Of a DNA stretch of 64,000 nt, positions 7,634 through 63,110 are shown one piece after another. The DNA is taken from assembly GCF_001194135.2 (NCBI RefSeq), contig NC_068986.1, positions 77,221,637 through 77,285,636 of the forward strand, given 5' to 3'. Made by a program: the position numbers and the translations under genes. Position 1 is the stretch's first letter, and each line of letters starts with the position of its first letter. The notes beneath the pieces are model-generated. The model was not told the DNA's origin. It saw only the letters and a list, made by a program, of their open reading frames with translations, and made no database searches. The stretch comes from Octopus bimaculoides (lineage: Eukaryota).

Positions 7634-7675
<42 letters not shown>

Positions 7676-8299: not shown

Positions 8300-8865
8300 G
8301 TGCTCCTTTATTTGTTTGTCATTTGACTGCGGCCATGCTGGAGCACCGCCTTTAGTTGAACAAATCGACCTCAGGACATATTCTTTGTAACCTAGTACTT
8401 ATTCTATCGGAACTTTTTGCTGAACCGCTAAGTTACGGGGAGGTAAACACACCAACTTCGGTTGTCAAGCAATGGTGGTGGGGACAAACACACACGAGCA
8501 TATACAGACATATATATGTAGGATCTTCCAGGCATGGAGTGGATTCGATCCACCATAGCCAAATTTAAATAGCACAGTAACAGAACTTTTCCCACGGTGG
8601 AACAGCAGTTTTACATTTGCCAGATTGCCTTAGCTAGGCCGAAATAATGTCTTCACTTGCTGACTTCTTTCAGTTTCCTTCTACCAAATCCACTCACAAG
8701 GCTTTGGTGGGCCCAAGGCCATAGTAGAAGACACTCGCCCAAGGCGCAACGGTTATATATATTATATATATAAATATATACACGTATATATATATATATA
8801 TATTATATATAATATATATTATGTATAGGCACAGGAGTGGCTGTATGGTAAGAAGTAGCTTACGG
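8300..8865 (-). mobile_element. SINE fragments (Meta-like copy 8300-8500; CORE-like pieces 8640-8865)
   Basis: Similar to the copies at 36060-36425 and 14588-14925. Confidence 0.55.
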
Positions 8866-10759: not shown

Positions 10760-10982
10760 ATATCATCATCGTTTAACATCCGCTTTCCATACTAGCATGG
10801 GTTGGACGATTTGACTGAGGACTGGTGAACCAGATGGCTACACCAGGCTCCAAATCTCCTAATGCCAACCACTCCAAGAGTGTAGTGGGTGCTTTTACAT
10901 GCCACTGGCACGAAGGCCAGTCAGGTGGTACTGGCAACAGCCACACTCAAAATGGTGCATTTTACATGCCACATGCACACAC

Positions 10983-11014
<32 letters not shown>

Positions 11015-11440
11015 NNNNNNNNNNNNNNNNNNNNNNNNNNNNNNNNNNNNNNNNNNNNNNNNNNNNNNNNNNNNNNNNNNNNNNNNNNNNNNNNNNNNNN
11101 NNNNNNNNNNNNNNNNNNNNNNNNNNNNNNNNNAGCATGGGTTGAACGATTTGACTGAGGACTGATGAACCAGATGGCTGCACCAGGCTCCAATCTGATC
11201 TGGCAGAGTTTCTACAGCTGGATGTCCTTCCTAATGCCAACCACTCCGAGAGTGTAGTGGGTGCTTTTACGTGCCACTGGCACGAAGGCCAGTCAGGCGG
11301 TACTGGCAACGGCCATGCTCAAAATGGTGTATTTTACGTGCCACCTGCACAGGAGCCAGTCCAGCGGCACTGGCAATGATCTTGCTTGAATGTCTTTACA
11401 AGTGCCAGGAAGGTGATGCTGGGCACAGATGCCATCACAA
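10760..11440 (-). mobile_element. Two RTE 3'-tail fragments either side of an N gap
   Basis: Reverse complement of the RTE 3' UTR and (GAT)n tail seen intact at 45350-45536. Confidence 0.8.
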
Positions 11441-26586: not shown

Positions 26587-27968
26587 GTAAGTTTGTTTTC
26601 TTTCTCTCGTTCTTTATTTATTTACATTTCATATTTATTTACATTTTTTCATGAGAAAGCATGGCCAGTATGCATGTGTGTCTGTGAGTATGTCTGTCTG
26701 TGTGTACTCCAGTTATTAAATGTGGCATTGAAATTGCTTACTATTTTTCTTTCATGTTTTAAAATCTCTTAATAGAGGGCTTTTGCTGATTTTTTTAAAA
26801 CTACATGAGAGAGAGGGACACACCTCTCTCTTTCTCTCCTATTACTCTCTCTTTTATCAACCTGCCTCACTTTTATTGCTCTTTCTTGGCCTCTCTGCTA
26901 TCTCTGTTCTTTTCATCCTATCTTTCTCCTATTTTACACTCTCTTCATTACTTTCCCTCTATCTCCCACCTACTCTTTTCACTCTGACTCTCCTAACACA
27001 CATTCTCTCTCCTGCATTACCCTTTCTTCTTTCTCCTTTTATTCAGGCCCAATTCTTTTACTCTCTCTTCTATCACTCTCTCACTCCGGGTATTTTTTCC
27101 TGTCACTCTTTCTTTTTCTCCACTACACCATGTGATAACAGCATATGGTGATACAAGTGATAGAAACTATCCTTTCCATACATCCACTTATGGGAAAAGA
27201 CAGGGACAAATTAACACAAACAACACAAGAGAGGACTATAGTCTTGTCAAGGATGAAACAACTGCTCTGTGCCTCATGTGTATGAGGCACCAGAGATAGC
27301 TGCATCTGATGCCTCTAACCTACAACGTTTCTATATGAACAGAGATATTATAGACTAGAGAACACTCTTTAAGCTTGCTAGGAACAAACCAGTTCCTTTG
27401 GTGCTGATGCAACAAAAAATATCTATAAAATAGTAGACAATAAGAGGAAGGGCTTCCAGCCATAAAAACTATGCCAAAAATGGAATGTATGAGTGTGTGT
27501 GTGTGTGTGCATGTGTATGTGTGTCTGTGTGTATGTATGTGCATGTGTTTTATGCACTCTTCTGTTCAGAATTAGCACGTTAATAGCCAATTATTCAATC
27601 AACTGAATGACCTTTTCATGGAATTAACATGAAAAGTGGCTGAGTACTCCACAGACACGTGTACCCTTAATTTAATTCTCAAGTAAAATCAGGGTCAATC
27701 AGGTGACATGACTGGACCTTTGAATTACAGGTATGTGATGGCTTCTGCACAGTTATATATCATTTTCATCGTTTAATGTCCACTTTTCCATGCTTGCAAG
27801 GAACTTGCTAAGGCAGGTTTTTCTACAGTTAGATGCCCTTTCTATTGTTGGCCCTCACTTGTCTCCAAGCAATTAAGTATTTTCCCATAGCCAGACAATT
27901 TTTGTATTACAGTGACGCTTGTTTACAGTTATCATATGATATCAAGATAAGAGAACTCAAAAACAGTT

Positions 27969-28111
<143 letters not shown>

Positions 28112-28176
28112 TACCTGTTGAATGTTTTGCTGCAACTATGTTACACTAGTAATTATCATATTTTCACAAATGGCAG

Positions 28177-28286
28177 GGCTAAAGATGAGAGAGGACCGAT
28201 CTCAGCAGTACTTTGATGCCAATATCAATGCTGATTCTGGCCTTTTTAATGATGATCTGTTACTAGAGGAAGAGATTTATGATAAG
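28177..28286 (+). CDS. STX16: Syntaxin-16 exon 6
   Basis: AAATGGCAG| (R)LKMREDRSQQYFDANINADSGLFNDDLLLEEEIYDK |GTAAGA; 110 nt, phase 1 to 0. Confidence 0.93.
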
Positions 28287-36059: not shown

Positions 36060-36222
36060 TATCTTTTATCTTTTATTTGTTTCAGTCATTGGACTGTGGC
36101 CATAATGGGGCACTACCTTGAAGGGTTTAGTTGAACAAATTGACTGCAGTACTTATTTTGTCATACTCTTTTGCCAAACTGTAAAGTTACTGGGACATAA
36201 ACAAACACACACACACATACAT

Positions 36223-36264
<42 letters not shown>

Positions 36265-36425
36265 ACAGATTTCTACACAGTTTCCATCTACCAAATTCCT
36301 TCACAAGGCATTGGTCAACCCAGGGCTACAGTAGAAGACATTTGCCCAAGTTTCCACATAGTGAGACTGAACCAGAAACCATGGTTGCAAAGTGTGCTTC
36401 TTAACCACATGGCTGTACATGCACT
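36060..36425 (-). mobile_element. Meta-like and CORE-like SINE fragments around a (TA)n tract
   Basis: Similar to the copies at 8300-8865. Confidence 0.6.
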
Positions 36426-36790
36426 TATACTGTAAGCTTATCATTTTAAAGGTCTAAATTTTTTTTAATGTAAAGGAGAGTCTAGAACAATTAGCAACAA
36501 ATTCTTTTCCTTCTTTCTGTGATTCTTTGCATTTTAATTCCTTGGTGAGAGGATTTAATTCATTATATCATGATATATGTGAAAATATAAACAACATGGC
36601 TACAGACAGCATCTGTAGGACATAATAAGTAATAACAAAACTGTTAAAGTCTATATTATAACCACCCCTCCTCTTCCTTTATACTTAAACAACAGTCTTT
36701 ATGATTGCCTTAAATAATACCTTGCTGTGGCTGTTGTGTTCCTTTTATTATTTCTTTCTCTACCCTTTAGATGTCTTGTTGGTCTTTTAA

Positions 36791-41804: not shown

Positions 41805-43200
41805 TAATGGGACAACCATTTATGTTATTGCAGTAAAGTGGTGCCATAAATCAAATAGTTCTAATCAATCTGTGCCAAACTGATTGATTATATTATCCAC
41901 AATGAATAATTTTGCTTCACATGTCTCTCCTGAAAATGATACATGTTTTGCCCATGTAATGTAATATATTGCCCATTATACCATGTGCTATTTTTGCTGT
42001 TTTACGTAATCTTGGTTTACCAATTTTTTTCCCCAAGTATCCGCATTTATAATCAAGATGTCACTACCTGTGTCTAACTGTAATTTGGTATTTACATCAT
42101 TTATTTTTACATGTACTCTCCACTGAAAATACCTTTTTGTGTTTGAGCCTCAAGTTTGTTCTACAATAAGAACTCCTGTGGCCCAGCTTCTGACAACTAT
42201 AGAACTTTTTGTTTTTAAATGGACAATCCTTTTTGTAGTGTAGGTCTCCACAACCACAACATGGATTGAGGCCTGACACTTTTTTTTTATTGTGCTTCCT
42301 GGAATAACACATTTGAATTTTTTACACATTATGTTTAAGATTTACCATAGTCAGACATTCTTCTGCAATGGTCTGTAGGGATAAATCCTGATTTGCTTGC
42401 ACCATTTTCAAGAGAATTCTTGCCCAAATTTCTCTATCTTCAGTTGCTTATAAATCCTTGCACGAAGATAAGTGATTTGAACATATCCTGAGTGATATCC
42501 TGGAGTTTGAAATTTTCACACATATGGTTGACTATTCCAGTATAGGTGATAAAATCCTCCTCCTCATTTTTTGTTAAGTTCCAACACTCCATTCTGGTGT
42601 TGAATAATGAACTTGTATCACAAAAATTTTTGAAAGCAGTTCTATGGTTTCTTGGAAGCCAATCTCACTTGACCTTTCAGGCAGGATAAAGTTATGGTAA
42701 CACACGTGTTCGGCAGGAACTACCTTGCGTAGTACAAGCCTTACTTTTTGCTCCTCTGACCATGATTTGCACTTGTTAAAAATTCCAACGTATCTTTTAT
42801 AATACGTGGGAAATGTAATGCTCTCCTCCAGATTATACATAAATTCAGAAATTGCATTTGCTATGCTGTCTGGTGTAAACAAACTTGCTGGATTTTCGGA
42901 CTTCGCCGACTGTAACTCAGTTAATTGTTGTTGTTGTAGTATTTGTTTTTGCAACTCCTGTAGTTGTTTCTCTTGAAGCTGTACTACTACAGTTTTCTAT
43001 GATGCAGAAATTGTCAAATACTAATGTGAGTTTCGAATGATCCTCGTCACCAGATGTTATATCCTTATAGATAAACGAATACACTGCAACAGTGTAATAA
43101 CAATATAATTGAAACAAATAGCAGTAACCACACAGAACATAACAACAATCTTTTAAGAACCAACATTCCAACACTGTAAACTTTGAACTGGGGAACAAGC
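41805..43200 (-). mobile_element. Ty3/Gypsy 5' fragment: LTR end, PBS, gag, Zn knuckles, protease
   Basis: LTR end ..ATAACA at 43055; PBS TGGTGACGAGGAT 43040-43052; gag ITFPTYYKRYVGIF..WSEEQKVRLVLRK..HNFILP; CxxCxxxHxxxxC knuckles; protease LQLDTGSD near 42070. Confidence 0.85.
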
Positions 43201-45800: not shown

Positions 45801-46800
45801 GGGTTTTTTTTTGGATTGATCACACGATGTCACTCAGTTTTCTTTATTTTCAGAGCAGTTTTTCTCTCCTCCCATTTGGCAATTATTAATATAGTTCATT
45901 GAAATTTGTCAACACCAAATACCATCATATCCAGCAATAAATATTACAGATAAATGTTCGTGAGTTTACTTCAATTATTATTCACGTAAGAAGCAATGAC
46001 ATCTACACATACATCACAACTAAGTTAATAAAGCCATTCACTTCTGCATTGGCAACTCATACTTTTGAAGTATATCTTCACTGACCAGTGACAAGCAAAC
46101 CCACACAACAGTTTCACCAAAAGGATGAGTCAAAATTGGTTTGATGATAACAATTAAATCATTCAATACATCATTAAAAAGTAAAATATTCAGATATCAT
46201 TTGAACAAGACCCAAGGTCAAGACTTAAAAAGATTTGCTGTTAAAAGTTCAAGCACTAAAGTCAAACCATACTTAGAGAAATACTAAAGAATTAGTTGTA
46301 ACACAAAGCAACAGAGTTTAAAATTAATGCAGATGCCCACAATCTTTGAAAGTTTCTCTACTGTTCAAAACACAAAGACCGAAAGATGTTTTTTTTTTTT
46401 AAGACAAAAAAATTAAAAGTCAGGCCTGAAAATGTCAGTTAATGAACAATAAATTTAAAACATTTCATTTAAATTTATGGAGTTTTTTTCAGTTCAGAAG
46501 TCCTTAATAAGTTTCAGAAACTCAAGAAACTATATGAATTGATTCATTCGAAAAATAAACAAAAAACACCCATGTACAAATATCGGCGAGTGAAGAGCTT
46601 CCCATACAGATAGCCTTCGCTTGTCAATGGAATAGTATGAATAAGTGTTTCTCAGGCGAGGTTTCAAGTATATTCTTCCATAATTATCTCCCCTATATAT
46701 ATANNNNNNNNNNNNNNNNNNNNNNNNNNNNNNNNNNNNNNNNNNNNNNNNNNNNNNNNNNNNNNNNNNNNNNNNTATATAGCTATATAAAAAGTGTTGA

Positions 46801-46846
46801 CTCCCGTCCTATTTGAACGCTTCCTGTTGGATTGGCGGTTTTGAAT
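46801..46846 (+). promoter_or_regulatory. Candidate cell-cycle-type promoter (CHR, inverted CCAAT, E2F-like)
   Basis: TTTGAA 46812-46817 and 46840-46845; ATTGG 46831-46835; TTGGCGG 46832-46838; CTCCCG 46801-46806; ETS-like CTTCCTG 46820-46826. Confidence 0.5.
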
Positions 46847-46903: not shown

Positions 46904-46918
46904 ATGGAGAAAGAAGAG
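46904..46918 (+). CDS. PALB2: PALB2-like gene, candidate coding exon 1 (MEKEE)
   Basis: ATGGAGAAAGAAGAG|GTACGT, phase 0, just downstream of the promoter motifs; resembles human ..EEKEK| exon-1 end (recalled). An alternative start at ATG 46845 gives phase 2. Confidence 0.5.
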
Positions 46919-48157
46919 GTACGTCACTTTAGATAAGGAAATTCATTTTCAGAATTCTTCTCGTCTTTCAGATTTTTTTAAGATTTGTAGATTTTTCTTC
47001 ATTTTTATAAAGTTTTGTTTTTACCACTTGTTTCATTAACGCACGTTGTCACAATATTGACTTTTAATAAAACTCGTGTATCATTGAAAAACTCTGACAG
47101 TTATTTTGTTTTGTTAACTTTGTCAGTAGTTTCTACATAACTATTAATATAAATTCTTTTTTTTTTAATCGTAGCATTTGGTGAATTGTAATAATTTAAA
47201 AATATCGTCTGGCTCTCAATATCTAGTCTGCTTTTCAGTTTGTGACAATAAACATAAATAATAAAAACGAAGAAAATGTAATTAGCGAAAAAGTTAAATA
47301 TTTAAAAAAAAATTCAATTTAAAGAATAGTAAGTATTCCAGGAGACTTAATATTTATATACTAAAACATTTTTTTTTAAATGTCAAAATTTTCTTAATTG
47401 ATTTACCCAGCTTGCAAAAACAAAACATAGTCGAACTAGACCATGTTCATCTTACGAAGAATATGTAGAAATTCGAAATAGTCTGAACTGAACGAATCTT
47501 GTTGCACAAGATTACTTCTGATATACATTAAGTAATTTTTGTGTATTTGTGTGTGGGTGGTTGGGTTAGAAAACACGAAAAAATATCAATAAATGAACGA
47601 ACGCAAGTACATGCTTGTTAGAGTTTGTAATGAGTTTGATAGACTTGTATTAACAGTTCTCAGTAAGTTTAATTCTTTAGGAATTTGTAGCTCTGCATTA
47701 TCAAGAAAACTTTTTGCTTTGTTCTGAAATATCGCTTATAGTTATTTAAGTTTTAATTATTTGTATATAATTAGAAGCAAGAGCCGAATTCTGCTTTACG
47801 CACGTCATATAGTCCCTCATAACTTAAAAATAAAAAATTAATTTTCAGAGTTCACACGACTATGAAAAATTATTTAAAAGTTTTTCGAAACTTAAAATAA
47901 TTTTTTGGTTAGTTTCTCGAATTTTTCTTTTTAAATCATACAGTCCGACGGCAATAAATGTGTTTATGGGGAGAGACAAGCGAGGAGAATCTGAGATGGT
48001 CGAGCGCTCTGACACGTTTAGTGTAAAATGTAGATGTGTAACCTTAGGTCATCTTTGCTTGAAAAAAATTATAATTAAGGAACTCATCCGTGACCATCTC
48101 TTCCAAAGGCAGAGTGCACTTGTGGCCACATTATGTTTATGCTTATCCACTTTAAGT

Positions 48158-48483
48158 CATTGGTTCTTAACCTACTGGGGGAGGGGGCTCAGAAATTTCT
48201 TAGTGGGACGTGAGCCCTTGAAAAATAGCAGGAACTTCCCCAATTATATTTGTTATTCTCTTAACGAGAGCATGGTTAAATAAGTTTATGAAAAAATGCA
48301 TAAGTATCGCCTTATACTTTGAGTTTTCTTATTCTGCTATCTTAGAGCCGCTTACCATTTTCTATACTTATTGACCCTCCCCTTCATATCTCACAAAACC
48401 CTCACTAATTCTGAACTGTAGCTTTAACATTTGCTTTTATTTTGTAATTTTTTTTATTACAAGACCGAGGTTAAGAACTACGG
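48158..48483. mobile_element. hAT/Charlie-type MITE or left end of the adjacent hAT element
   Basis: CATTGGTTCTTAACCT..AGGTTAAGAACTACGG TIR-like ends; no clean TSD. Confidence 0.45.
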
Positions 48484-49169
48484 TATAAAGCTTAGGTATT
48501 ATCGTATAAAGACAAACATCTTTTTCGGTTAAATAGATTATAAACAAGTTTGATCCACAGTTTTCATATATATGATATAAAGTGATTCTTAAAAATCAAG
48601 AGACGTGCTGAAACATTATCAGATCATTATTGTAACATACTAAGAAATATTAACTTAATTTAATAAATGGAAAACTATTCTTAAATTTTAGGAAGATAAA
48701 AAGCATGATATATTTAAAAATCTGAAATAAAGCAAGAAGTATGTAATAGGTTCTACTATTGCTCAATTTAATAAAGTCTCAAAAATATTAAAACCTAGAT
48801 TGGAAAAATGAAAAATTTTAACAATAAAACCAGAATTTTCAATATTAAATGTTTGTTAAAAATATAGTAAATTTTTTTTTGTTAGCAAAAAAATAATAAT
48901 AATAATAATGTTAAACTAAAATTCAGATTTAAATATTACAGAAAGCACTAGGTAAAAATCTAAAGCTATGCAAAATCTTTTCTTTTTTAAAGAAACTTTC
49001 TTTCATATTTCATACAAATAAATACCATATTTTATTGTACAAATTTTTCATATAACTTTTTAACTTTTATTCTAAATTAAAAATTTTTTGGGGCTAGCAT
49101 TCTAACTTCGGCCTTGACATTACTTTACATGTGCCTTAGCTTTTGTTCACATATTTGTGTTGTCTACTG

Positions 49170-50830
49170 CACTAATTCGCAATGAGTACAAAGAAATGCA
49201 AGTATCTTGAATATATTCAATTTGGATTCGTGTGCCCCCAAAAGGGTGACACAGAAGTCCCCCAGTGTGTGATATGTTACAAAAATTTGAGCAATGATGG
49301 AATGCGACCCTCACGCTTGGAATGCCACTTGAAGACAACACCTCCTGCTCTTGTAGACAAGCCCAAGGCATTCGTTGAAAGAAAAAGACATTCCTTGAAG
49401 CAAGCTAACTTGGACAGTAGTGGGGCATTTCAGCAACAAACTTCAATGGTTGTTGAGACTTCTTATGAGATCACCATGTTGACTGCAAAGAGCAAGAAGA
49501 GCCATAACACAAGAGTCTCTCATAAAACCAAGTCTACTCTGTGTAGCAGAACTTGTTCTGGGGAAAGGTAGTGCAAAGAAGCTTTCTCAGATTTTGCTAT
49601 TAAATGATACAGTCCAGGGAAGGATAGATGACTTATCTCAAGACATAAAAGATCTAATTCTCGACCAAGTAAGAGATCCTCCTGTTTTTGCTATCCAGTG
49701 TGACGAAATGACTGACATTGCTCAGTGTTTTAGGCTACTGGTATATGCTCGTTTGGTGTCAGGCAACTGCATAAAAGAGGAAATGTTGTCCTGTCACCCT
49801 ATGGATAGTTGTGCAACAGCTATTTTTCATGATGTATGAAACTTCTTTCAGGAAAACCAACTTTTGTGGGATTCACTGGTAGGGGTGTGCTCTGATGGAG
49901 TCTAGGGTGAAAGAAAAAGAATCCATCTGTTGTAGGTAAACACTGCATACTTCATCATGAAGCCTCAAAATCCAGAACCTTACCCACTGAGATGAGAACT
50001 GTCCTGAATGTGTTATCAAGGTTGTCAACTTTGTTAAAGGTGGAGCCTTAAACAGTCATCTTTTCAAACTGTTGTGTAAAGATATGGATTCTGAACATAA
50101 ACATTTTCATGCACCACAACACCATTTGAACCTTCATGGCCAAACTCGACCTCTAGAAATGTTGAATTCAGCAGGGAAATACAGCCAGTTTTAGTTACTT
50201 GGATTCTGCTCTCATTCAAGGTAACCTTGATTCTGAATTGAAGAAACAATCGCTCATCTAACTGTTTTGTAAACGGAATTTATCAGATACTTCCCAGATA
50301 TAGATGAAAAGCGTGAAGCTTGGAAATTCATCAGGAACCCATTTTAGTTGTGAAGTGACTGATGTTTTGGATGAAGTGCAAGAGGAATTTCTTGAACTCA
50401 ACTCCTCATCTAAGGAAGACTTCAAAGAACTGGATCGTGAAACATTGTGGATTAACTAACTTCCTGTTTACCCTCTGATCTCACATCAGGCTCTTCAAAT
50501 TTTAGCTCTGTTTGGATCCAAGTATCTTTGTGAAGCTGCATTTTCCATGCTTGTTGCTGTCAAGACCAAGTACAGAAACAGGCTGAATGTTGAAAGCGAC
50601 TTACATTGATGCACTCTCTGGCATTCAACCATGCAGTCAAGATGTTGTCACTAAGAAGCAGTGTCCAGTATCTCACTAATAATGTGACTAAGTATCCCAC
50701 ATTTTGTATAATGTGATTATATATAAAATCCTACATATTTTGTATAATGTGACTAATTCATATTTAAAATCTGGAGGGAATTTTATTCATAGATGCAAGG
50801 GGGTGTGGAGAGAAGGGCAAAGAACCACTG
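49170..50830 (+). mobile_element. hAT (Buster/ZBED5-8/SCAND3-like) transposase fossil
   Basis: PQCVICYKNLSNDGMRPSRLECHLKT (BED-like), FAIQCDEMTD, HCILHHE, LFGSKYLCEAAFS..KTKYRNRL; many stops; right TIR AAGAACCACTG ends at 50830. Confidence 0.88.
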
Positions 50831-52188
50831 GTATAAGTTAAATATGTGGCTGCTCTTTCTAGCATGTTGATAGACCTCGTTAGGGGAACCCTTCTAACGT
50901 CATTAAGAGCACGCTCTTTGGTAAATTTTTACAATCAGACCCCCACACGTTTCACTAAAAAAAAAAACCTGAAACATATACTAATATTTTCATGATAAAA
51001 TTGGCGATTTACTGTGCTTGAGAATACCTGTCCATCTTGGTAAAAAGGAGGCCTAGGCACAACGTACATGTCTGTCCTCAGCAGTCCTTCAGTATTAGTA
51101 TCTGGTTAGTACAGATACAGAACCTAGTGTGTAGTGGACACAATATAGGTGGCAAGGAGAGGACAGGAAAATGAATTGGGAGTGCCCAAGTGGAGGTGAG
51201 CACAGTCGACCTCCTGTGGGGTTTTTTTTCCTTTGTGTGTAGAAATAGAAAATGCTGAAAGAAGACAGTACATCTATAGGTTACTTTACTTGAGTAACTT
51301 TTTGCCTTTCTTTAGTCTGTCGTGTCATAATTAAACATTAATCAAATACATTAAATTTCAGTTTCTCTTGCTAGTATTTTACTTACCCCAAACTTTTCTT
51401 GCTGCATATAATAATTAACTACACTATTTTGATTTTAAAAATAATCAAGAATTTGGAGGAATTTTACAAAGAAAGAAAATGCTTTTTGGGACAGTTTAAC
51501 AAAAAGTTCTCAAAATTATGCTGGAAAGTTTTAATTTAAAATACTATTTTAAAATGAGAGGTTTTGTATCCCAGAACTAGAGGTTGGTCATGGATAGGTT
51601 GGTATTGAAAAGGTTAATATGTGTTAATTTACTGTGTTCATTGTCAAATATCTTGTTTCTGAATATGTAATTGGTTCCTGTCTGATATTGTGTATAATAT
51701 CTATGAAGAGGACACCTAATGATGGAAATTTTTCATAAAGTTGAGCTTAATAGACCAATTATAATCTTAACTCATCACAGAGATTTACATTGTACTTGAA
51801 TTTTTTGTTCAATCTGCACTGCATACTATCAACTTGTAGCACTTTTTTCTAGCACATATTGTCACTAATATCCAAGATGTGATAATTTCTTCTCTAATTT
51901 AAATTTTAAAGTTACTTGGCAGAGGAAGGGCAGTGCCTCCAAACCTTTTTGGGTACTGCTAGATGGCTAATAGACAGCCAGGTTAATATGGTTATTCAGT
52001 TAGGACTTCTCTTAACTACCCTAATTCGCAGTTGACTCTTTGGAGCTCTTCTGTTATGCAATGAATCACATTCAAATCCATCTTCCTTGCTCTCACTACC
52101 AGTTAGGAAAAAGTGTTTCCGTTAACATTGTTTTCTTTCGTTATCTATGAATCTGTTTCAAATCCTGCAATGCTTTTTCTTGTTGCAG

Positions 52189-52249
52189 CTTTATAAACAG
52201 CTATTACTTATGAAAAAGGAGTATGCCCGTAAGAAAAAGAAACTTGAAG
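52189..52249 (+). CDS. PALB2: PALB2-like exon 2 (coiled coil), 61 nt, apparent +1 frameshift
   Basis: TTCTTGTTGCAG|..|GTAAGC. Removing one T from CTTTATG gives LYKQLLLMKKEYARKKKKLE, aligning with human exon 2 [20 protein letters not shown] (60 nt, recalled). Confidence 0.65.
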
Positions 52250-52899
52250 TAAGCAAGCAGAAAGCTGTTTCTTTTTATTTATATTTTGGCTGATTTTTTT
52301 AAAAAATTGATTTTTAATACATTTATGTTTATGATTATATGATGATGATAGTTTCTTTCTGTCAAAAGATCATAAGAGCAGCACACTTTTAAGTGCCTAT
52401 GTAACCCAATCATTGATGTTGTATTCCTTTTCTTTCTACCTGCACTTAAAGCGAGTCAGTCTATGCAATTTGTTCCCACTCTTTAAACTTGGAGATCTAA
52501 CCACAGTGGTTCAGCAAGCTATGACTGCTGCAGTGACCAGCAAGCTGTAGATTTTACATTGGAGTGTCCTTCTTGGTGAGTTGCCATACAGGGCTAGAAA
52601 GCTTCACATAACCTGGAATTGCTGGAAGAGTGTCAGAGGGCACAGGACTATCTGAAGGATTCTCCACTCCTTGATTTGCTATTGAGGTTAACTCCCTTTT
52701 TCCTTTCCCAAGGCACTCGTAACACAGGGACAATTTGTGTTCAGAGATTTTTTCATAACATGCTAATTATTCTAGAGTTGGGATCCTGGCAGTGCTACTA
52801 CTCCAGGTCGGAATAGACCTGGGAACAATCATGGCTAAAAAGTTGTTCTACATTCATCAAGACCCTGGATACAGTTTAGTCATCCCTATAATTGTTGAA

Positions 52900-53260
52900 A
52901 TCTAATATAATAAATGCAAGAACTAATTTTTGTGTGTCTGTGTGTCGCACTTAGACCCCCCCCCACTATTTAATGACCCTTCTATTCCTCATGATGGGAT
53001 GAGAGTAATAGTAGGCATAGACGGTGAGGGCAGTGGTGAAAACAGATAAAGGAAAAGGAGAGTTGTTTTTTATTAAAAGTAGTATATTGATGGTGGCAGT
53101 GGGAGGAATAATAAAAGAGGAGTGGGTATGTGAGAGAGAGGGAGATGACGTACAACTTTAAGTATGTCTCTTTGACAAAGTCCTGTTGCCAATATACTGA
53201 ACACTATCCTTTTTGTTTTATCTTTTGCTTTCTTTAATACACACACTCACACACTGAAAT
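52900..53260 (+). mobile_element. Possible Helitron-derived non-autonomous fragment
   Basis: TCTAATATAATAAATGCAAG..TGTGTGTCTGTGTGTC start resembles Helitron 5' ends; weak. Confidence 0.3.
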
Positions 53261-54044
53261 AAGTTTCCCCCAAATTAAACATATCTAATATAACAAATGT
53301 GAATTTCAGTGTGTAACACTTTTTCAACATTAATAAATGTTATTGGATCTAAAGGTGCATGTGTGTATATGTGAATATGTGTGTGGGTTTTTTTACACGG
53401 GAGCAGAGGATGGAAGATGAAAAATAAAATTTAATGATATTCATGGATTTCTTTATCAGCAAAAATGTACATGTACTTCTTTCTAATATTTGTGGTTAAT
53501 AGAAAACACTTGGTCCATAAAATGTTTGAATCTATAGTTTAACTAACTTAACAGTTAGGCTAAATAAGACCTTTTGATATTTAAGTACTCAATTTGATTT
53601 TTACTTAAGAGCACTTAACTCTGTTTACGATCACTAATACTCCTAGAAAGACATCATTGCCACAAAATCACATGCTCCCACATCTAAACACGAAAATATT
53701 CACTTGTCAACAAAATATAAACAAGAAACAACTAATTTGTACTAGCTTTAAAGCTGCCTGATAAGGTGGCTTTTAAGCTAGTGGGATATAATTCTTACAA
53801 GAAACCCTTGCTGTGATTCACTTTATCTCTGCTCAAAATACTTGTTTCATCATCATTTAAGGAGTTAGCTTTTTTCTAACTTTTTACATTTTGCATTCAA
53901 ATCCAGCTGGCGTCAATGATGCTTGTCATCCTTTCAAGGCTGATAAAGTACCAGTGAAATACTGGGGTCAATATAAGACTTGCCCCCTCCACTCAAACTG
54001 CTAGCCTTGTGCCAAAATTAAGATTTATTTTTATTATTACAGTG

Positions 54045-55037
54045 AACCTCATTTCGAGGTTCTGCCAGTTTTTGTCAAATACAGTCTCACACTCAAGGCA
54101 GTGTACACAGGTGCATTGTTGTGATGAAATCACCACTCCCCACTTTGCCACTGATTGGGGCGTTTTCATATCACCTCATCTTGCAGACACTTCAGAACTG
54201 CCAAGTAAAATGTCTGGTTAATAGTTTGACCTGAACAAACAAATTCTGTGTGAACAATTCCTTTTGTATTGATAAAACAAATCAGCATTGTCTTGACATT
54301 GGACTTCACTTGACACACTTTTTTGGGGTATGGTGACATTAAGTGTTTCCATTGGCTTGATTGCTGCTTTGTTTCTGGATCGTATCTGTAGCACCAGCTT
54401 TCGTCACCACTGATAACTTTCAAAAAATGGTTCAGATCAACTTCCAACTGTTCTTTCAGTTTGTGACCTGCATTTAGTTGTGAGCAAGCAAGGCACAAAT
54501 TTTGCTGCAACTCTTTTCATTTGAAATTCCTTGCTCAAAATTCATTGGCAGGAGCTCCAAGACACACCAGTCGTATCAACAAGTTTGTCAGTTGTTCAGT
54601 GACAGTCTTCCAAGATGAGTTCATGAATTTTCATGATGTTTTCGTTTATTTAGGAAGTTGATGGTTGTCCTAAACCGGGTTGGTCTTCAAGTGGCCATTC
54701 CTAAAGTGTGAAAACCACTTGTAAGCTTGTTTTGCTCATGACAACATCCTTATAAGCTGTTTGAAGCATGACAACTGTTTTGGCTGCCATTTTCCCCAGC
54801 AGGAAACAGAATTTCATGGAAGCATGCAATCCCTTCCTTTCAGCCATCGCCAAAATTCAACAGGCGAGAATCACTGCCAAACAGATGCACCATGTGGCAG
54901 TATGACGACACATGATGCCACTGGTTGGCAGATTGATGCCTGAAGGTCGCATCAAGTGGCTTCTAGCTGTGGGAGCCTGAACTACAACGGGCTTGTCTCA
55001 TAGAACATTTCCAGTTACTTTTAGGTACCTCTTCATA
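54045..55037 (-). mobile_element. Mariner (DD34D-type) transposase fossil, 3'-truncated
   Basis: VISGDESWCYRYDPETKQQSSQWKH..PKKVCQVKSNVKTMLICF..GQTINQTFYLAVLKCL; TIR-like TATGAAGAGGTACCTAAAAAGTAACTGGAA at 55037. Confidence 0.88.
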
Positions 55038-55255
55038 GTTGATTACATTGATCCCTGTGCTCAATTGGTACTTTATCAAGGATGAAAGGGAAAGTCAACC
55101 TGTTAGGAATTTGGACTCAGAACGTTAAGCTTATAATAATAAAAAATAAAGTAAGAAGGTTCCAGCAATTATTGCATAACCTAGACTTAGTAATGGAATT
55201 CCTTTTGTATTTTAATGATGACTAAAATACTTTTTCTTTTATATTTCTTTTGCAG

Positions 55256-56401
55256 CTTGCGATCCAAGCCAAGAATTCTCAAGAAGTACCATGCAGGGAA
55301 AGAATATCAACACAATTAAAAACACACCCTGCCACCTGTGAAATGGGAAATAAAGAATTCTGTTATAAAAAAGATAAAATTAATAGTTCCCAGGTTGAAA
55401 AGATAAATAATATTTGTGTTTCTGAGGACAGTCTAAAACTTTCATGTAAAACTAAAAAATTACTGAACATTCCTTCCAATTCTATTGAGCAAAAAACTGA
55501 TCCCATTAAAACTGAAATTGCTTCTGATTTCAAAACTAGCTTTCCCTTACCCACAAACTCATTTCAAATGGTTGAAAGTGATTGTCAAACATCTGGGAAT
55601 TCTGATTGTTCATCTGTATCTTTAAATACCTCTAAAATCTTATTAAAAACTAGTAATGACACTCAACATAAATGGAAAACATGTTTATCTAATTCCTTTG
55701 CTTCTGGTGAATCTACAAAGAAAATGACTCCCAATGAAACTAGTGAAACAATGGAACCACAAATAACCATTTCTACAAATGTAAGGGAAAGTTCTGATTT
55801 AGTATGTTCCTCAAAACGAGTTAATGAAGAAAGATTGGCAGTTCCTTTATTACAAGAATCATCACATATTGAAAAACAAAATGATTTCAAACATAATCAA
55901 CTTGAAATCGATAACAGTTTAAAACGTTCTAATGAAAATCCTTTTGACTCCAACCATATTTCAAAATCTGATGAGGAACTAATTTCAAGTGAAGCATTGC
56001 GTTGTGCTATGGTCAATATTCCACTTAAGTGTCAGGAAGTAAGTAGTAGTTTACAGACTGGTGATGACTGCATAAAGAATCAAACAGCTTTATTGAATCG
56101 GAAAGAGGTAAATAATGATACAGATTCCCTCCAGATAATTAACTCTTCAGCTTCTCTCTTCAACTCAGATCAGAAAATTTCATCCCAGTCTTTGCAATGT
56201 TGTCACTTAAATCAAAGTAGTAAGAATCAGCCTATTGAAATAATGGGTAGTTTATCTTCAGATCATACTAAAAACTCTGATGCTAAAGAAAAGCAAACTG
56301 AGATTCTGGATAAACTAGTTGTAAGACAGTTTCAAAAAGATCCTTTTTCTGTATGTGATTTTCAAACAATCTGTGATTTAAAATTAACAAGAACTGAAAA
56401 G
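55256..56401 (+). CDS. PALB2: PALB2-like exon 3 (1146 nt, low-complexity linker)
   Basis: Strong acceptor TTTCTTTTGCAG; 382 open codons in AT-rich DNA; phase 0/0; donor AAG|GTAAAT; FPLPTNSF at 55541-55564; ends CDLKLTRTEK (human ..GNLQLVSELK before the WD40, recalled). Confidence 0.8.
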
Positions 56402-57025
56402 GTAAATATATTTTTATTGCATGTATTATTTTCCCCTAAAATACACACATGATTATATACCAACTGAAACTTCAAAATGTTTGTAGCTCTCTTTCAAAAA
56501 CTTAATATCAAGTTTAAAAGATTCTTGTTTAGCCCTGACCAAGCAGATCTATCATCAAAAGGATTCCAGCCATGACTGTCCCCATTGCTCTTTGTATTGA
56601 GATAGTAGTGTAAAATTTGGCTGCTAACAAGTTGTGTGACAACGTAGAGCTTCCTCATTGACTCGATATGGAAATATAATGCCATAATTGTGGAATACAA
56701 TTTCTTTTTAATAAAATGATGACTTAGTTCATTTGTTGAGAAAATATCTCAATTGGTGTATTGGTTCCTTGAAATGTTTCAAATCATATTTTATCCTATC
56801 AAATACAATGTAAAGCTTTCTTACTTTAACTGCAGTTTAGTTCTGTACAAAGCCATTAATTAGTTTAGTAGTCACTTTTCATTATCAGTCAAAAGTAGTG
56901 TTTGAAGCATGATTACAATTATAAACTCCATTTAAAAAAAAAGAAACCTGGATATTTTCATTTCATAAAAAGCATGTTTCTTTTAAGATGTGTATGTTGA
57001 TTTTCATATTGTTTCACTTTTACAG

Positions 57026-57205
57026 ATTCCTGATAACAATGAAGTTGTCAGTCTTTTGAACACAAGTTGTAGTGTTTCCATTCATAGAGACTTTACTGTA
57101 TGTGAGAATTATTTAGTGGGTGTCACCAAATCGGAAATTCTATTCTGGACATATACTAAAAATGAAGACTGGCACATAATTTATCAGTGGAAAGTTTCTG
57201 ATTAT
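57026..57205 (+). CDS. PALB2: PALB2-like exon 4 (WD40 blade 1)
   Basis: TTTTACAG| IPDNNEVVSLLNTSCSVSIHRDFTVCENYLVGVTKSEILFWTYTKNEDWHIIYQWKVSDY |GTAAGT; W/W/Y-x-W spacing matches human [35 protein letters not shown]| (recalled), same phase-0 end. Confidence 0.78.
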
Positions 57206-57599
57206 GTAAGTGTTATTTTTATTAAGTTTAAGAAGCTGGAAGAGAAGTCTTTCAGTTTACACAGGTTTGCCTTTAAAATGACATATTTATTTTCTGAAAC
57301 ATTATCATTGACTTGCTGTAATACTTTCATTCACTTTTAAAGTATCTGTAATGCAAGGTTATTTAAATATAAGGGAAATATTTCGAAATATGTCTCATTA
57401 TCATAGGCAGTCTGTTGGTGGTTGATGATTATTTGCCATGTGAAATATCACTAGTTGTATTAAAAGGAAATTGTTCTCTCCTGGTCTCTGTCCTCAGCTG
57501 CAGATATTAATGTTCAATCTCTTTGTGTTATATTTATCCACTTGCTTCTTAGTCAGTGGTTGGTTGGGTGTAGCCCAATTTACTCCTTTCTTTCTATGA

Positions 57600-57795
57600 T
57601 ACTGGTTGTTCAAAGATCAACTATATTGATGTTATATATTTCCAGCTCCGATGCCATAAGTGTAGTATGCTCCTCTAATGTTCTAACATAACATTGAGCT
57701 ATATAAAGGTTTGATGTCTTGCATCCAAGTGAATTTTTTTGCTGTTGTTCAGAGCAGGAGACAGCTGGTGAAATCCTTGTTAACCGAGGTTGCAA
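57600..57795 (-). mobile_element. RTE/BovB-like endonuclease N-terminal fragment
   Basis: IAQCYVRTLEEHTTLMASELEIYNINIVDL resembles IATWNVRTL..ALVARELARYNIDIAAL. Confidence 0.55.
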
Positions 57796-57847
57796 TAGAT
57801 CTAATATACTTTTGACTTATCGGCATTATTTCATAGGATTCCTTTAA

Positions 57848-58066
57848 CCCATTTGATATCAACCTGCCTGAAATTGCCTCTGACTCTGTAGTACAAATGT
57901 CTTGTTTTCAAAAGTTTTGAATTAAAATCTTCCATTAAACCTTAGTTACAATTTATGTTCCTAACACTAGCTTAATGATAACTAAGTTATTTTACTAAAT
58001 TTGTTATATTTAAAATTAATTGAAAGAAACTTAGAGCATCTCAACAGAAATATGGTAACAAAAAGG
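57848..58066. mobile_element. piggyBac-type MITE, 219 bp
   Basis: TTAA (57844-57847)|CCCATTTGATATC..GGTAACAAAAAGG|TTAA (58067-58070). Confidence 0.7.
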
Positions 58067-58654
58067 TTAAGTACTAGTTTCTTTTGCAATTAGTAGCAAT
58101 GCTTTCTCAGCTATAGTATACAAAACTGACAAGGATAGGCCAAGTCATTGATTCTACAACCACTAGTGATGGGCTAGTAGATACATGGTGACACAGCTGT
58201 TGACTCGCCTGAATTCATTTGTTCCCTTTTGACAAGTTTTGATTTTTATCCTGCAGGGTGTCCCAAAACCACCCTCCTACCAAGCAAGCATGATGGGGCT
58301 GCCAGTTTTTTCCTCAACAGTTTGACTATACACATTGTATTGGCTTGCAGGAAACATATCTAATAGCCTATTAAAACAAATATTTTTAGAAAGTTTTGGT
58401 ATTCAAAATGCTATTAAGATTGAGTGGTAAGAAATCTGTTGTGATGTAAGTACAGTTTGCTGCATCAAACAACTTAATACATGTTCTATTAGAAATTTTT
58501 TTAAATTCAGTATTTTTATATAGTACTTATTGATTCATTTATATGTAATTGGGTAGTAATTCAAGACCAATTCCCATTTAATTTTATATTGTATTTTGAG
58601 TTAAATGGTATTGCAAACTTATCACTTTCCATCAAGAAACTTCCTTTTCATTGT

Positions 58655-58850
58655 CCTTTAACGTCTGTTTTCCATGCTGGTATGGGTTGGACGGTTTGAC
58701 CAGAACTGGAAAGCTGCACCAGGTTCCAGTCTTATTTGGTTAGGTTTCTATGGCTGATGCCCTTCCTAATGCCAACCACTTTACAATCTGTGCTAGGTGT
58801 TTTTAACATGACAGCACTTAGACGTGGCACCAGCACGAATGCTGGCACAG
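58655..58850 (-). mobile_element. RTE 3'-tail / SINE tail fragment
   Basis: TTTAACGTCTGTTTTCCATGCTGGTATGGGTTGGACG..GCCCTTCCTAATGCCAACCAC. Confidence 0.7.
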
Positions 58851-59112
58851 GACTCTAGTAGGCCAATCCTCTTCACAAGGGGGAGCAGCCCTAACACTTC
58901 TGCTGTGGAGGATAGGTCCTGAGTACAGCAAAGTGACGGTATCTTGGTCCTTTGTCATCTTGTCTGGTGGTTTGTTAATCCATAAAAGTACATACTAATC
59001 CTTGAAATAAGATATTCTGATAGTTTTGTTTTTTACGGAGAAGTCATATCACAGAGTAAGTAAATGTTGGTTTTTAAATTCATGTTTTAGGGATTGTATC
59101 TCTTCACACAAA

Positions 59113-62100
59113 ATGAGTAGTGCAAGTAAAAAAAAAAGTTTGTCAATATTCAGAGGCATATTTAAAATTTGGATTTATACCCGCTATCCATGATAAACGG
59201 TCACCTTTCTGCCTCTTATGCTAACAATGCTTGACCAACGAATCAGTGAAACCAAATCGTCTTGAGTTGCATTTGAAGACAAAACATAGTGCGTATGTAA
59301 ATTCAGTTTTGAATTAGTCTTTGAAGAAGTTTGCAAAAAGAACAACTGTAATGTCTCTGTTTACTACACAAACTGGTGTTAACACCTGTTGTACTCTTGA
59401 GGCTAGTTATGAAATTTCATTACTCATTGCTAAATGTGGAAAAAATCATACTATTGGAGAGGATTTAATTAAACCATCAATATCAGCATTTTTTAAAACA
59501 GTCCTGGAAAAAGATAAGTTGTTCAAGCCATGCTACTCGGTAACAATACTGTTAGAAGAATAGATGAAATGAGTGAAGATATTGAAGTACAACTTATGGA
59601 AAAGCTGAAATCAAAAAAATTCTCATTACAAATGGATGAGTCAACTCTGAGACAGCGAGGTCGTATTGCTAACCTATGCAAAATATATTGATAAAGGTGA
59701 ATTTGCTGGAGAAATCATATTCTGCGAATCATTAACAAATATCTTTGAAAAACTGAATATGTTAAATAAACAACTTCAAGGATCAAATAAAACTCTTATT
59801 GATGCTAAGATGAAGATATTTGGCTTTGTTACATTCATTGAGTTATGTCAAAAGAATATTTTTGCCAAAATTTTTAACCAGTTTCATTGGCTAAAAAAAA
59901 TGTGTGGTGACCGATACTGCTGTACTTGTCATTGTGGATCATATGAAAATATTGGCCTCTGATTCGAAAGAAAAATTTTCTGATTTAAAACAAATTGATT
60001 TTCCAACTTGGGTGCTGCTGCCAATGCTAGTGGATATATGATGTTTCGATACAGTACCAAGAAGAACTCTCGGAAATGCAAAATGATGAGGCAGTGAAAA
60101 CTTTATTCAATATAAAAGGAGTGATGTCATGGCTTTGTGATGAGACAAGAACTAAATGCCCAAATTCAACCAACTTTGCAAAAAAATTGTTGTTACCGTT
60201 CCCATCTTCATATTTAGCTGAATGTGGCTTTAGTGCTGTAAATGATTTGTTATTGAAGAAAAAAAAAATCAACTGGATATCACTAAATGAGAAGACTTGA
60301 GACTAAAGCTGACTAAATTGGTGCCTAATCTAAAATCTCTCTGTAGCAGGCATGAAGCACAAGGATCTCCCTAACTTTAGTATACTTATTTTATATATCT
60401 GCATTTCAGTTTTCTTGCTCGACACTGTTCTGTTTGGTATTATGATAGCGTACTTTGTCGTCGGCCCGACTGGATGAGTGACTGAACTGTGTGCCTCACC
60501 AACTGCCCCACTCATTATGTCTGTTAACTATTTATTTGTAGTGAAACAGCCCACTTCTCTGGCTTGGAGGTGTCCTCCACAACACCTCCAACTTGAGATT
60601 TTTTTCTACACAGTATATTTTTTTTCTCCCTCTATCACATAGAACAAAATCTTTTTTCAATCTCTTATCACAGAGAAATTTCATACAGTTCTTCGATATA
60701 CACCTGTCAACAATTATTTTTTTTCAACCCTATCTATTACACAGAACAAAATCCTTTTTTTAATTTCTAATCACAGAAGCATTAAATTATTACATAGTTC
60801 TCTGACACACATCCATTGGCAATTATTATTATTCTTATTTTTCAACTCTATTACACATTCAAACCACGCTATTCGGATATATTCCACATACTAACACATG
60901 AGCTACCTGACTGAATTCCTTCATCAGACTTGTATTATTATGAAAGAAATATGTAATCAATCTGCCCATTTTCAGTTCCACAAATACACAATGTTTTGTT
61001 CTGGTCAAATGATTCTCTTTAATTTCACTTTGTCACAGTATTTCTTTGCTATTTTTACTTTTCTTTTTTCAAAGGAGTTTGCTGTTATTTCTGCACTCCT
61101 ATTTTTTGTAACTTTCAAAGCTAAACGCAAAACAACAAAAAATGAATACTTTAATTTCACATAAATTACTTAGTCATATTACTGCAGGAAATTACTCTGA
61201 AAGAAATTTTTGCAGAAAGGTGAATAGATTGATTACATATTTCTTTCGTTATGTTATCGCAGTTTTGTGAGATTTGGCTGTTATTTCTAGCATATGGATA
61301 GCCTGCTTGAAGGGCAAGGACGTAGAATTGGGAGGAGAGGGTGTTAGGNNNNNNNNNNNNNNNNNNNNNNNNNNNNNNNNNNNNNNNNNNNNNNNNNNNN
61401 NNNNNNNNNNNNNNNNNNNNNNNNNNNNNNNNNNNNNNNNNNNNNNNNNNNNNNNNNNNNNNNNNNNNNNNNNNNNNNNNNNNNNNNNNNNNNNNNNNNN
61501 NNNNNNNNNNNNNNNNNNNNNNNNNNNNNNNNNNNNNNNNNNNNNNNNNNNNNNNNNNNNNNNNNNNNNNNNNNNNNNNNNNNNNNNNNNNNNNNNNNNN
61601 NNNNNNNNNNNNNNNNNNNNNNNNNNNNNNNNNNNNNNNNNNNNNNNNNNNNNNNNNNNNNNNNNNNNNNNNNNNNNNNNNNNNNNTCTAAGTTATGGGT
61701 GAAAACCTCGGATCTTGTGAATTTTCCAAAGTCCTTTCCCCACCCCTTCGGAAAAGATTTTCCCCTCAAATTTCTTTATTACTGTAACGTTTGTTGTTTG
61801 AAAGGCATTTATATGAAATTTCATTAAAAAACCATTTTCCTAAAAGTTTTGAGAGAAAAACTTGGATCTTGTAAATTTTCTGAAGTCCTCTCCCCACCGC
61901 CCCTATTACTTCCTGCGCATTTTTGTTTTCATATTCGTTTCCTACACATTTTTTACACCCGTTGCACTATTTTTTTTTTTTTTTTCGTTTCTGGGTAATA
62001 TTGTAAACATTTCTCTTTAATTTTTAATTCATCACCAAATTTTTCCTTGTATTCTGCGGTCATTGTTGTATCCTGCATATTTTTGAATTCTTGTCACCAA

Positions 62101-62672
62101 ATTTCTTCTTGTATCCTGCGATCATTGTTGTATCCTGCGTATCTTCGAAGACTCATCGCCACTGTTGTGTCTTGCGTGTTTTTGAATTCTTGTCACCACT
62201 TTTACAAAGTGTTATGATTTTAAATATTTTCCCCTACATGTTGTTTAAATCCTTGTCGCCACTGTTGTCTTGCTTGACCCTGTTCTGTGTGGTATTATGA
62301 CGACTTATTTCGTTGTTGGCCTGACTGGCCCAAACTGTGAGTGGCCAAACGGCGTGCCTCGCCGACTGCCCCACTCATTATGTCTGTCAACAATTTAATT
62401 GTAGTGGAACCGCCCACTTCTCTGGCTCGGGGCTGTCCTCCACAACAATGTTTTTGAAATTATGTTTAACTGCCCTTTTGTGTTTTTTATTTTTCTCTTT
62501 CATCAGTGCTATGTTCTTTGGATGCTTGTTTAGAGACCAAATTAATAGCTTTTTAAGCTTCCTCCAAGTGAATCATCATCGTAGTAAAATTTTGAATAGC
62601 AAAAATTAGATATCACAAGCATCAGGATTTTAGAAATGTTTCGATGGGGCATGGCCAAAAATCGGTTTAACC
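59113..62672 (+). mobile_element. hAT (Buster-type) transposase fossil, internally deleted, with an LTR element nested in its 3' UTR
   Basis: MSSASKKK..YLKFGF..SPFCLLC..KPNRLELHLKTKH, EASYEISLLIAKCGKNHTIGEDLIKP, FSLQMDESTL, FPSSYLAECGFSAV (59113-60373); hAT-like right end GGGGCATGGCCAAAAATCGGTTTAACCTTAG at ~62645-62675. Confidence 0.8.
60408..62447 (-). mobile_element. Non-autonomous LTR retroelement (TRIM/LARD-like) with PBS-like array
   Basis: Direct repeats 62263-62447 (TGTTG..CAACA) and 60408-60584, roughly 80% identical by eye; PBS TGGCGACAAGGAT 1 nt inside the 5' LTR (62249-62261); purine-rich AAGTTGGAGG before the 3' LTR; no coding signal in the visible interior (61349-61686 is N). 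Confidence 0.75.
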
Positions 62673-62937
62673 TTAGAAGAATGACAGGTAGTCCTCAGTT
62701 TTGCACAAGGCTACCAATTTTTTAGGGTGTTGTTGGTGAATCAATTCACTTTACTGGTACTTTTTGGGGACCTGGAAGGATGAATAACAGTCAGCCCTGA
62801 TGGATTTGAAATTAGAACATAGAAAAAGGCATAACTAAATATTGTATAGTGTTTAATCCAGCACTTCACCATTTCTCCCATTCCATTTGCTTTTTCATTT
62901 TATTTAGTTATTACTGAAAAACCTCTTCTGTTTTCAG

Positions 62938-63110
62938 CTTGAGGAATGTTCCACTGCAAGTCTTCATCCTTATGAAAGTGCTGTGTGTGTTGCTGTTCTA
63001 GGGTTGAAGGCTCAAATGCATCACAGTCTAATACTTTCTACATTCCAAGGCCTCAGTAAAAGAAGCATATCTGTAGTAGTTACATCTGTTGTCTCCCTTC
63101 CAACCAATCA
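62938..63110 (+). CDS. PALB2: PALB2-like exon 5 (WD40, gene continues beyond window)
   Basis: CTTCTGTTTTCAG| LEECSTASLHPYESAVCVAVLGLKAQMHHSLILSTFQGLSKRSISVVVTSVVSLPTN |GTATGT; 173 nt, phase 0 to 2; VCVAVLG vs human VCVALG (recalled). Not in the ORF track. Confidence 0.72.

Follow-up and report, generated by a model that had tools for sequence, protein, structure and literature searches.

A compact and diverged PALB2 homologue in Octopus bimaculoides with conserved ends and exon borders

Gene structure at the PALB2 locus

The window analysed here is a stretch of 64,000 nucleotides (nt) of Octopus bimaculoides DNA (contig NC_068986.1, positions 77,221,637 to 77,285,636, forward strand), AT-rich (35% GC), eukaryotic, and containing 11 runs of N. 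Positions 46904-63110 very probably represent the 5' part of the single O. bimaculoides orthologue of PALB2/FANCN, gene LOC106884335. A preliminary description of this DNA, made without database searches, had proposed a diverged PALB2 homologue at this place, built from five exons with canonical splice sites. We found these five exons on the + strand at exactly the coordinates proposed, all bordered by canonical AG acceptors and GT donors, and they splice into an uninterrupted frame of 524 amino acids (aa). This product corresponds to residues 1-524 of a 740-aa NCBI protein (P0001), with 100% identity over 100% of its length. P0001 is titled "uncharacterized protein LOC106884335 [Octopus bimaculoides]" at NCBI, and its UniRef name refers to the PALB2 WD40 domain. 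Window positions 36904-64000, the stretch covered by the locus that we retrieved, are the same as GCA_001194135.2 CM046606.1 without any mismatch, and the complete coding structure could be rebuilt exactly, with nine exons. The window holds the 5' 70% of the gene, that is, exons 1-5 of 9 and residues 1-524 of 740, including only about the first third of the propeller (exons 4 and 5). As had been predicted, the 3' exons lie beyond the window; their positions are given below as window-equivalent coordinates.

46904-46918, + strand: exon 1, 15 nt (ATG GAG AAA GAA GAG, MEKEE), phase 0, donor gtacgt; residues 1-5 of P0001
52189-52248, + strand: exon 2, 60 nt, phase 0/0, LYKQLLLMKKEYARKKKKLE; core of the coiled coil
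55256-56401, + strand: exon 3, 1146 nt, 382 aa; polar, fast-evolving linker between coil and propeller, ending after K407
57026-57205, + strand: exon 4, 180 nt, 60 aa, phase 0/0; first strands of the WD40 propeller (…ILFWTYTKNEDWHIIYQWKVSDY), equivalent to human exon 7
57206-62937, + strand: intron 4, with an assembly gap at 61349-61686 and decayed transposon-like open reading frames (ORFs) at about 59117-60300
62938-63110, + strand: exon 5, 173 nt, ending in phase 2 inside codon Q525; continuation of the propeller, including the VCVAVLG strand
64351-64572 (window-equivalent), + strand: exon 6, beyond the window
65671-65761 (window-equivalent), + strand: exon 7, beyond the window
66959-67086 (window-equivalent), + strand: exon 8, beyond the window
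67455-67662 (window-equivalent), + strand: exon 9, beyond the window

The architecture is that of a compact PALB2, with a short coil encoded by exons 1 and 2, one long linker exon, and a seven-bladed WD40 propeller at the C-terminus. The N-terminal coiled coil begins in exon 1, whose 3' border is the counterpart of that of human exon 1, between K16 and L17. The linker had been described as a 382-aa low-complexity segment: the length is exact, but the segment is polar and rich in S, K and N rather than strictly of low complexity (67% polar residues, S 15%, K 10%, N 8%, entropy 3.94 bits). A sub-threshold match of the linker to SSrecog (17 bits vs 22.2) was the only match given by the in-window protein and was dismissed as chance. 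The W..W..Y.W string that had been placed at an exon end is indeed present in exon 4, and the boundary corresponds to human intron 7, but the exon does not stop at the last W: it runs five codons past it (…YQWKVSDY, followed by the strong donor gtaagt).

An in-frame stop is located just upstream of the ATG of exon 1. The next ATG upstream, at 46845, sits 59 nt before the MEKEE ATG and is therefore out of frame. The Octopus vulgaris protein (P0002), which is 90% identical end to end, begins 20 residues earlier in its gene model, with MKRLGSLWNYELCLKNIPVL ahead of MEKEE; this extension either reflects a 1-nt indel that separates the two species or is an artefact of the gene model. The start codon is preceded, at a distance of 129 nt, by a 72-nt assembly gap (46704-46775), and because of the closeness of this gap the 5' untranslated region and core promoter are incomplete in the assembly.

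The gap at 61349-61686 falls wholly within intron 4. Since the octopus assembly has the identical gap, we used the orthologue of Argonauta hians to examine it. The Argonauta locus (L002) contains no N, and its junction between exons 4 and 5 is the same as in the octopus. Its first five exons measure 15, 60, 1146, 183 and 173 nt and have splice sites of the types seen in the octopus, and all nine exons are equal in length to those of the octopus or differ by one codon, with the same phases and an uninterrupted frame. Intron 4 of Argonauta is 789 nt long, without N, has stops in every frame and contains no exon. Moreover, the O. vulgaris and Argonauta proteins run unbroken over the exon 4/exon 5 junction, and alignments to human PALB2 span it with a single 1-residue gap. 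Because the Argonauta intron is free of exons and the protein alignments are continuous over the junction, the gap conceals no coding sequence.

These comparisons bear on whether the exons belong to one functional transcript at all. The transposon remnants in introns 1, 2 and 4, the assembly gap in intron 4 and the mere 15 nt of exon 1 might raise the suspicion of a pseudogene in decay, or of unrelated ORFs joined into a chimera by gene prediction. We consider this highly improbable, given that the same nine exons with their lengths, phases and open frame exist in the gap-free Argonauta locus and that the O. vulgaris protein is so similar. The results described below go in the same direction: the ratio of non-synonymous to synonymous substitution rates (dN/dS) is well under 1 in both terminal domains, seven intron positions are common with human PALB2, and many molluscs as well as a nemertean have proteins that combine the N-terminal coil with the C-terminal propeller.

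Homology of both ends to PALB2 and shared intron positions

Both ends of the protein are homologous to PALB2. For the C-terminal end, the HMMER search suggested in the preliminary description was run on the full-length protein P0001, and Pfam PALB2_WD40 (PF16756) was matched with E=1.2e-7 and 31.4 bits (threshold 27). Residues 428-738 are aligned to positions 40-346 of the 347-position profile, and PF16756 is the sole family above its cut-off. A phmmer search of the full protein against all PDB chains returned human PALB2 (2w18/3eu7) only, with E=5.2e-7, and a profile made from three octopods again returned human PALB2 only. The motif VCVA(V)LG, which had been proposed to line up with the human protein, is present in exon 5 as VCVAVLG and is aligned to human VCVALGN. 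When the three-octopod WD40 profile was scored against 1.84 billion representative proteins (E<=1e-3), 18 proteins were obtained. Of these, 17 were other than the query itself: PF16756 was the best Pfam family for 14, three had no Pfam match, and no other WD40 family was the top match for any of them. Among the 17 is a mammalian PALB2. The best match by sequence, both in the PDB and among these representative proteins, is hence PALB2 and not another WD40 family.

The structural check gave the same answer. An AlphaFold model of the propeller, obtained with an alignment of 20 sequences of which one row is a mammalian PALB2, is all-beta and confident, with a predicted local distance difference test score (pLDDT) of 86.4 and a predicted template-modelling score (pTM) of 0.84; with three octopod sequences only, the pLDDT was 33.8 and the model unusable. 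Compared to the PDB with Foldseek, the model ranked human PALB2 first (2w18, E=4.6e-18, template-modelling (TM) score 0.81; 3eu7_A, E=1.4e-17). All other WD40 chains were at about 1e-10 or worse, which gives PALB2 a lead of about 10^7-fold. The IWN and NP motifs (human W1038/N1039 and N1096/P1097) are invariant.

We asked how these data fit an unrelated WD40 protein that resembles PALB2 by chance and through the generic beta-propeller fold. The low identity to human PALB2 (about 19%), the marginal Pfam score and the retrieval by Foldseek of over 1500 WD40 chains with E<=0.001 are what might be expected of such a protein. Generic seven-bladed propellers such as G-beta, Ski8, Tup1, WDR5 and Sec12 indeed share the fold with the octopus protein (Foldseek E~1e-10, TM 0.5-0.66), but they give no sequence-level match, no Pfam assignment and no common gene structure. 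PALB2 is the only PDB sequence match among all WD40 chains, it is ahead by about seven orders of magnitude in the fold ranking, and no homologue is best matched by another WD40 Pfam family. In addition, the N-terminal coil matches PALB2 independently, and five propeller introns match human PALB2 in column and phase. An unrelated WD40 protein is thereby effectively refuted.

The N-terminal coil of PALB2 serves in BRCA1 binding or self-association. In the octopus, the string KKEY that had been taken as the mark of a coiled coil is present. As a single sequence, the first 47 residues have the mouse PALB2 coil (6e4h/7k3s) as their sole PDB match, with an E value of 0.26 that is not significant alone. 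In the mollusc and nemertean homologues, the N-terminus follows a clear consensus, L..L..MKKEYARK.KKLE.A.RA. A profile built from mollusc N-termini only (A4), which includes no vertebrate sequence, placed PALB2 coils in the top two positions of the PDB (6e4h/7k3s, E=3.1e-6; human 8yap, E=4.4e-4), with generic coils such as NEMO and GCN4 lower (E>0.03). Mutation of L17, L21, L24, Y28 or L35 is reported to abolish homologous recombination (HR) by human PALB2, and the counterparts of these residues in the octopus are L6, L10, M13, Y17 and L24.

The gene structure is also conserved with human PALB2. The human coding exons end at c.48, 108, 211, 1684, 2514, 2586, 2748, 2834, 2996, 3113, 3201 and 3350, with exon 2 spanning 60 nt (c.49-108), according to a study of splice variants (PMC9306493). 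The octopus introns were mapped onto these borders through the 20-sequence alignment, which was built without reference to exons, and the following correspondences were obtained.

Octopus intron 1, between residues E5 and L6: human intron 1, between K16 and L17, phase 0
Octopus intron 2, after the 60-nt exon 2 (phase 0/0, same size as human exon 2): human intron 2
Octopus intron 3, after K407: human intron 6, after K862, phase 0
Octopus intron 4, after Y467: human intron 7, after E916, phase 0
Octopus intron 6, in W599: human intron 10, in W1038, phase 2
Octopus intron 7, after E629: human intron 11, after M1067, phase 0
Octopus intron 8, in S672: human intron 12, in R1117, phase 2

Seven of the eight octopus introns therefore match human introns 1, 2, 6, 7, 10, 11 and 12 in column and phase, five of them inside the propeller. 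Only octopus intron 5 (in Q525, 3' of exon 5) has no human partner, and human introns 3, 4, 5, 8 and 9 have no partner in the octopus. With seven of eight introns common to both genes, the agreement cannot be due to chance, and it constitutes evidence independent of residue similarity. It also bears out the earlier proposal that the coiled-coil exon and the K-ending boundary before the WD40 region have human equivalents, since they coincide with human introns 1, 2 and 6 in position and phase. In a pairwise phmmer alignment, octopus intron 3 is ten residues off human intron 6 and octopus intron 7 is three residues off human intron 11. The multiple alignment is the better guide, but the matches of introns 3 and 7 are alignment-dependent.

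Besides a mammalian protein, which is a named PALB2, the profile scan found proteins of a nemertean, a cuttlefish and many gastropods and bivalves; the invertebrate homologues are all unnamed at NCBI. Lophotrochozoan homologues include those of Haliotis, Gigantopelta, Patella, Aplysia, Dreissena, Mya, Sinanodonta, Saccostrea and the nemertean Lineus. Like the octopus protein, they have the three-part layout, the N-terminal consensus and a C-terminal PF16756 propeller. Most of them carry KAHV..KL.E after the coil consensus, whereas octopods have lost this basic KAHVxxK helix. The octopod proteins are also the shortest that look complete (740 aa, vs 814-2181 aa in the other lophotrochozoan homologues). 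Two sets of entries are irregular. The 646-aa protein of Acanthosepion pharaonis (P0005) has a repetitive stretch ahead of its propeller (…AIRSLSYPLPSVHCPSVAIRSLS…) and a C-terminus that leaves the family after blade 5, so that its gene model is probably faulty or truncated. In two PALB2-like isoforms of Rhynchocyon petersi (P0016 and P0023, 363 and 383 aa), exon 1 or exons 1-2 are joined straight to the WD40 region and the linker is skipped; these are either genuine isoforms or annotation artefacts.

Constraint on the coil and propeller, proposed function and evolution

Values of dN/dS were computed between O. bimaculoides and A. hians. The coil has a value of 0.06, the propeller 0.19-0.25 and the linker 0.67, indicating that both ends of the protein are under purifying selection. 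The linker exon is exactly 1146 nt long in both species (55256-56401 in the window, 12743-13888 in L002) with 46% aa identity, and the alignment of the two linkers has about ten gap positions per side; its length has been kept without its sequence being kept. The octopus linker of 382 aa in one exon compares with about 800 aa over exons 3-6 in the human protein, which has 1186 aa in total. Relative to human PALB2, we recognised no ChAM, MRG15-binding or KEAP1 (ETGE) elements in the octopus protein, by what is a weak test. Such linker modules are accessory, and membership of the family does not depend on them.

The human protein (2W18, 3EU7, 8YAP; mouse coil 6E4H/7K3S) otherwise resembles that of the octopus in having a coil with the same hydrophobic core positions and, at the protein C-terminus, a seven-bladed WD40 with conserved hydrophobic residues at the place of the BRCA2 pocket and with the IWN and NP motifs. 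In a preprint (bioRxiv 10.1101/2020.08.27.270553, citing Oliver et al. 2009), the human pocket is lined by V1019, M1022, A1025, I1037, L1046, L1070 and P1097, with K1047 and K1098. The octopus counterparts of the hydrophobic residues are I580, L583, G586, I598, L607, V632 and P652, which are encoded by exons 6-8, outside the window. The seven hydrophobic columns are conserved across the family, with G in octopods where their lophotrochozoan relatives have A (the A1025 position). Conservation of the pocket residues extends across molluscs, and that of the coil across molluscs and also to the nemertean.

Several results weigh against assigning the gene to PALB2 or against a full equivalence with the human protein. 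The full-length Pfam score exceeds the cut-off by only 4 bits, and the Argonauta orthologue, at 25.2 bits for PF16756, is just under it. The in-window 524 aa alone have no PALB2 match in Pfam or the PDB, and the same is true of their last 139 aa. Propeller identity to human PALB2 is about 19-20%. The structural match is not fully independent, because one row of the alignment is a mammalian PALB2 and AlphaFold was trained on 2w18. In the pocket, I and T stand in place of the human lysines K1047 and K1098. Finally, ChAM-like core and KEAP1-type ETGE ([DE]xTGE) patterns are absent from the octopus protein and from all mollusc homologues searched, although these patterns make a weak test. Taken with the Pfam match of the full-length protein, the PDB sequence search, the structure, the coil and the introns, which all support a diverged PALB2 homologue, the call made in the preliminary description was right, but it was based on motifs, and the homology is statistically undetectable from the window alone.

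By analogy with mammalian PALB2, the coil would pair with the BRCA1 coiled coil or with itself, and the hydrophobic pocket between blades 4 and 5 (exons 6-8) would grip the N-terminal helix of BRCA2. BRCA2-RAD51 could in this way be brought to resected double-strand breaks for HR, as in mammals. Homology together with constraint at the coil and propeller makes this mammalian working model the most likely one, and it is from these that we infer partner binding. Another explanation could be that the protein derives from PALB2 and is orthologous to it, but has changed its job and no longer bridges BRCA1 and BRCA2, keeping for example only RAD51/RAD51C binding or self-association. The fast linker (dN/dS 0.67 and 46% identity between two octopods), the failure to find ChAM-like or ETGE motifs and the absence of the vertebrate linker modules, the replacement of both pocket lysines by I and T, and a length of 740 aa vs 1186 aa in human could all be read in this sense. 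However, the two parts that would form the bridge are those under the strongest purifying selection, and the pocket hydrophobics and heptad core are conservatively kept across molluscs, so that we regard a changed job as unlikely.

A comparative study dated the origin of PALB2 "before vertebrates emerged" (PMC3969565), and the gene has been reported absent from Drosophila and Aedes (PMC13571142). Our search of the literature returned no description of a PALB2 from a mollusc or cephalopod. The identification is already known at the database level, because the sequence, the gene model and the PALB2_WD40 label are public, and the gene is an ordinary, diverged orthologue that was already domain-annotated. 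What the present analysis adds is the homology of the coil and the conservation of introns and pocket. It assigns an identity to a gene labelled uncharacterized at NCBI, shows that an orthologue of about 20% identity can be recognised from motifs and exon borders alone, and brings gene-structure evidence for a PALB2 older than vertebrates. We tend to favour a scenario in which lophotrochozoans keep a true minimal PALB2, made of coil, spacer and BRCA2-pocket propeller and devoid of ChAM, MRG15 and KEAP1 modules. The bridge would then be at least as old as the bilaterian ancestor and thereby older than the published date (PMC3969565), its absence from fly and mosquito would reflect loss, and the octopod protein would be a trimmed scaffold that defines the minimal functional PALB2. 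The compact 740-aa form indicates that the core of the coil, the motifs IWN and NP and the hydrophobic residues of the putative BRCA2 pocket are indispensable, and that the linker can vary freely. The result offers useful background for interpreting PALB2 variants and for the evolution of the HR pathway, and opens no new question.

Neighbouring sequences and transposon remnants

No neighbouring host gene was recognised in window positions 1-46700, and no neighbour gene was called within 10 kb on either side of the octopus locus. In Argonauta, an ABCC/MRP-type ABC transporter (TMD0_ABC, ABC_membrane and ABC_tran domains) is encoded on the minus strand of L002 (27250-30391), about 7 kb downstream of PALB2; it is the sole neighbour called, with no gene called upstream. 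Since no gene was called after the octopus gene, the two neighbourhoods are not comparable and synteny is uninformative.

Positions 1-46700 contain nine of the 11 assembly gaps, together with ORF fragments of retroelement-like look. Microsatellites reading IYIYIY or THTHTH occur in the ORFs 7569-8390, 10825-11309, 27833-28216 and 36118-36435. Most of the transposon-like ORF fragments, intronic and upstream, had no match in Pfam; among the upstream fragments, the sole Pfam match is DUF7083, at 42574-42954 on the minus strand (E=1.4e-13).

Inside the gene, two broken and mutually similar sets of ORFs are found on the + strand, in intron 1 (49176-50606) and intron 4 (59117-60300). Their likeness is seen in 'YLEYIQFGFVCP…VPQCVICYKNLSNDGMRPSRLECHLKT' compared with 'YSEAYLKFGFIPA…PFCLLC.QCLTNESVKPNRLELHLKTKH', and in the C-terminal pieces 'KYLCEAAFSMLVAVKTKYRNRL' and 'SYLAECGFSAVNDLLLKKK'. 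On visual inspection, they resemble two decayed copies of a single hAT-like family of transposons; the fragments of both introns had no match in Pfam. Intron 2 carries, at 54166-54510 on the minus strand, an ORF fragment of a mariner-type transposase (PF01359 Transposase_1, E=9.4e-10, 38.7 bits), which represents a decayed DNA transposon within the PALB2 intron.

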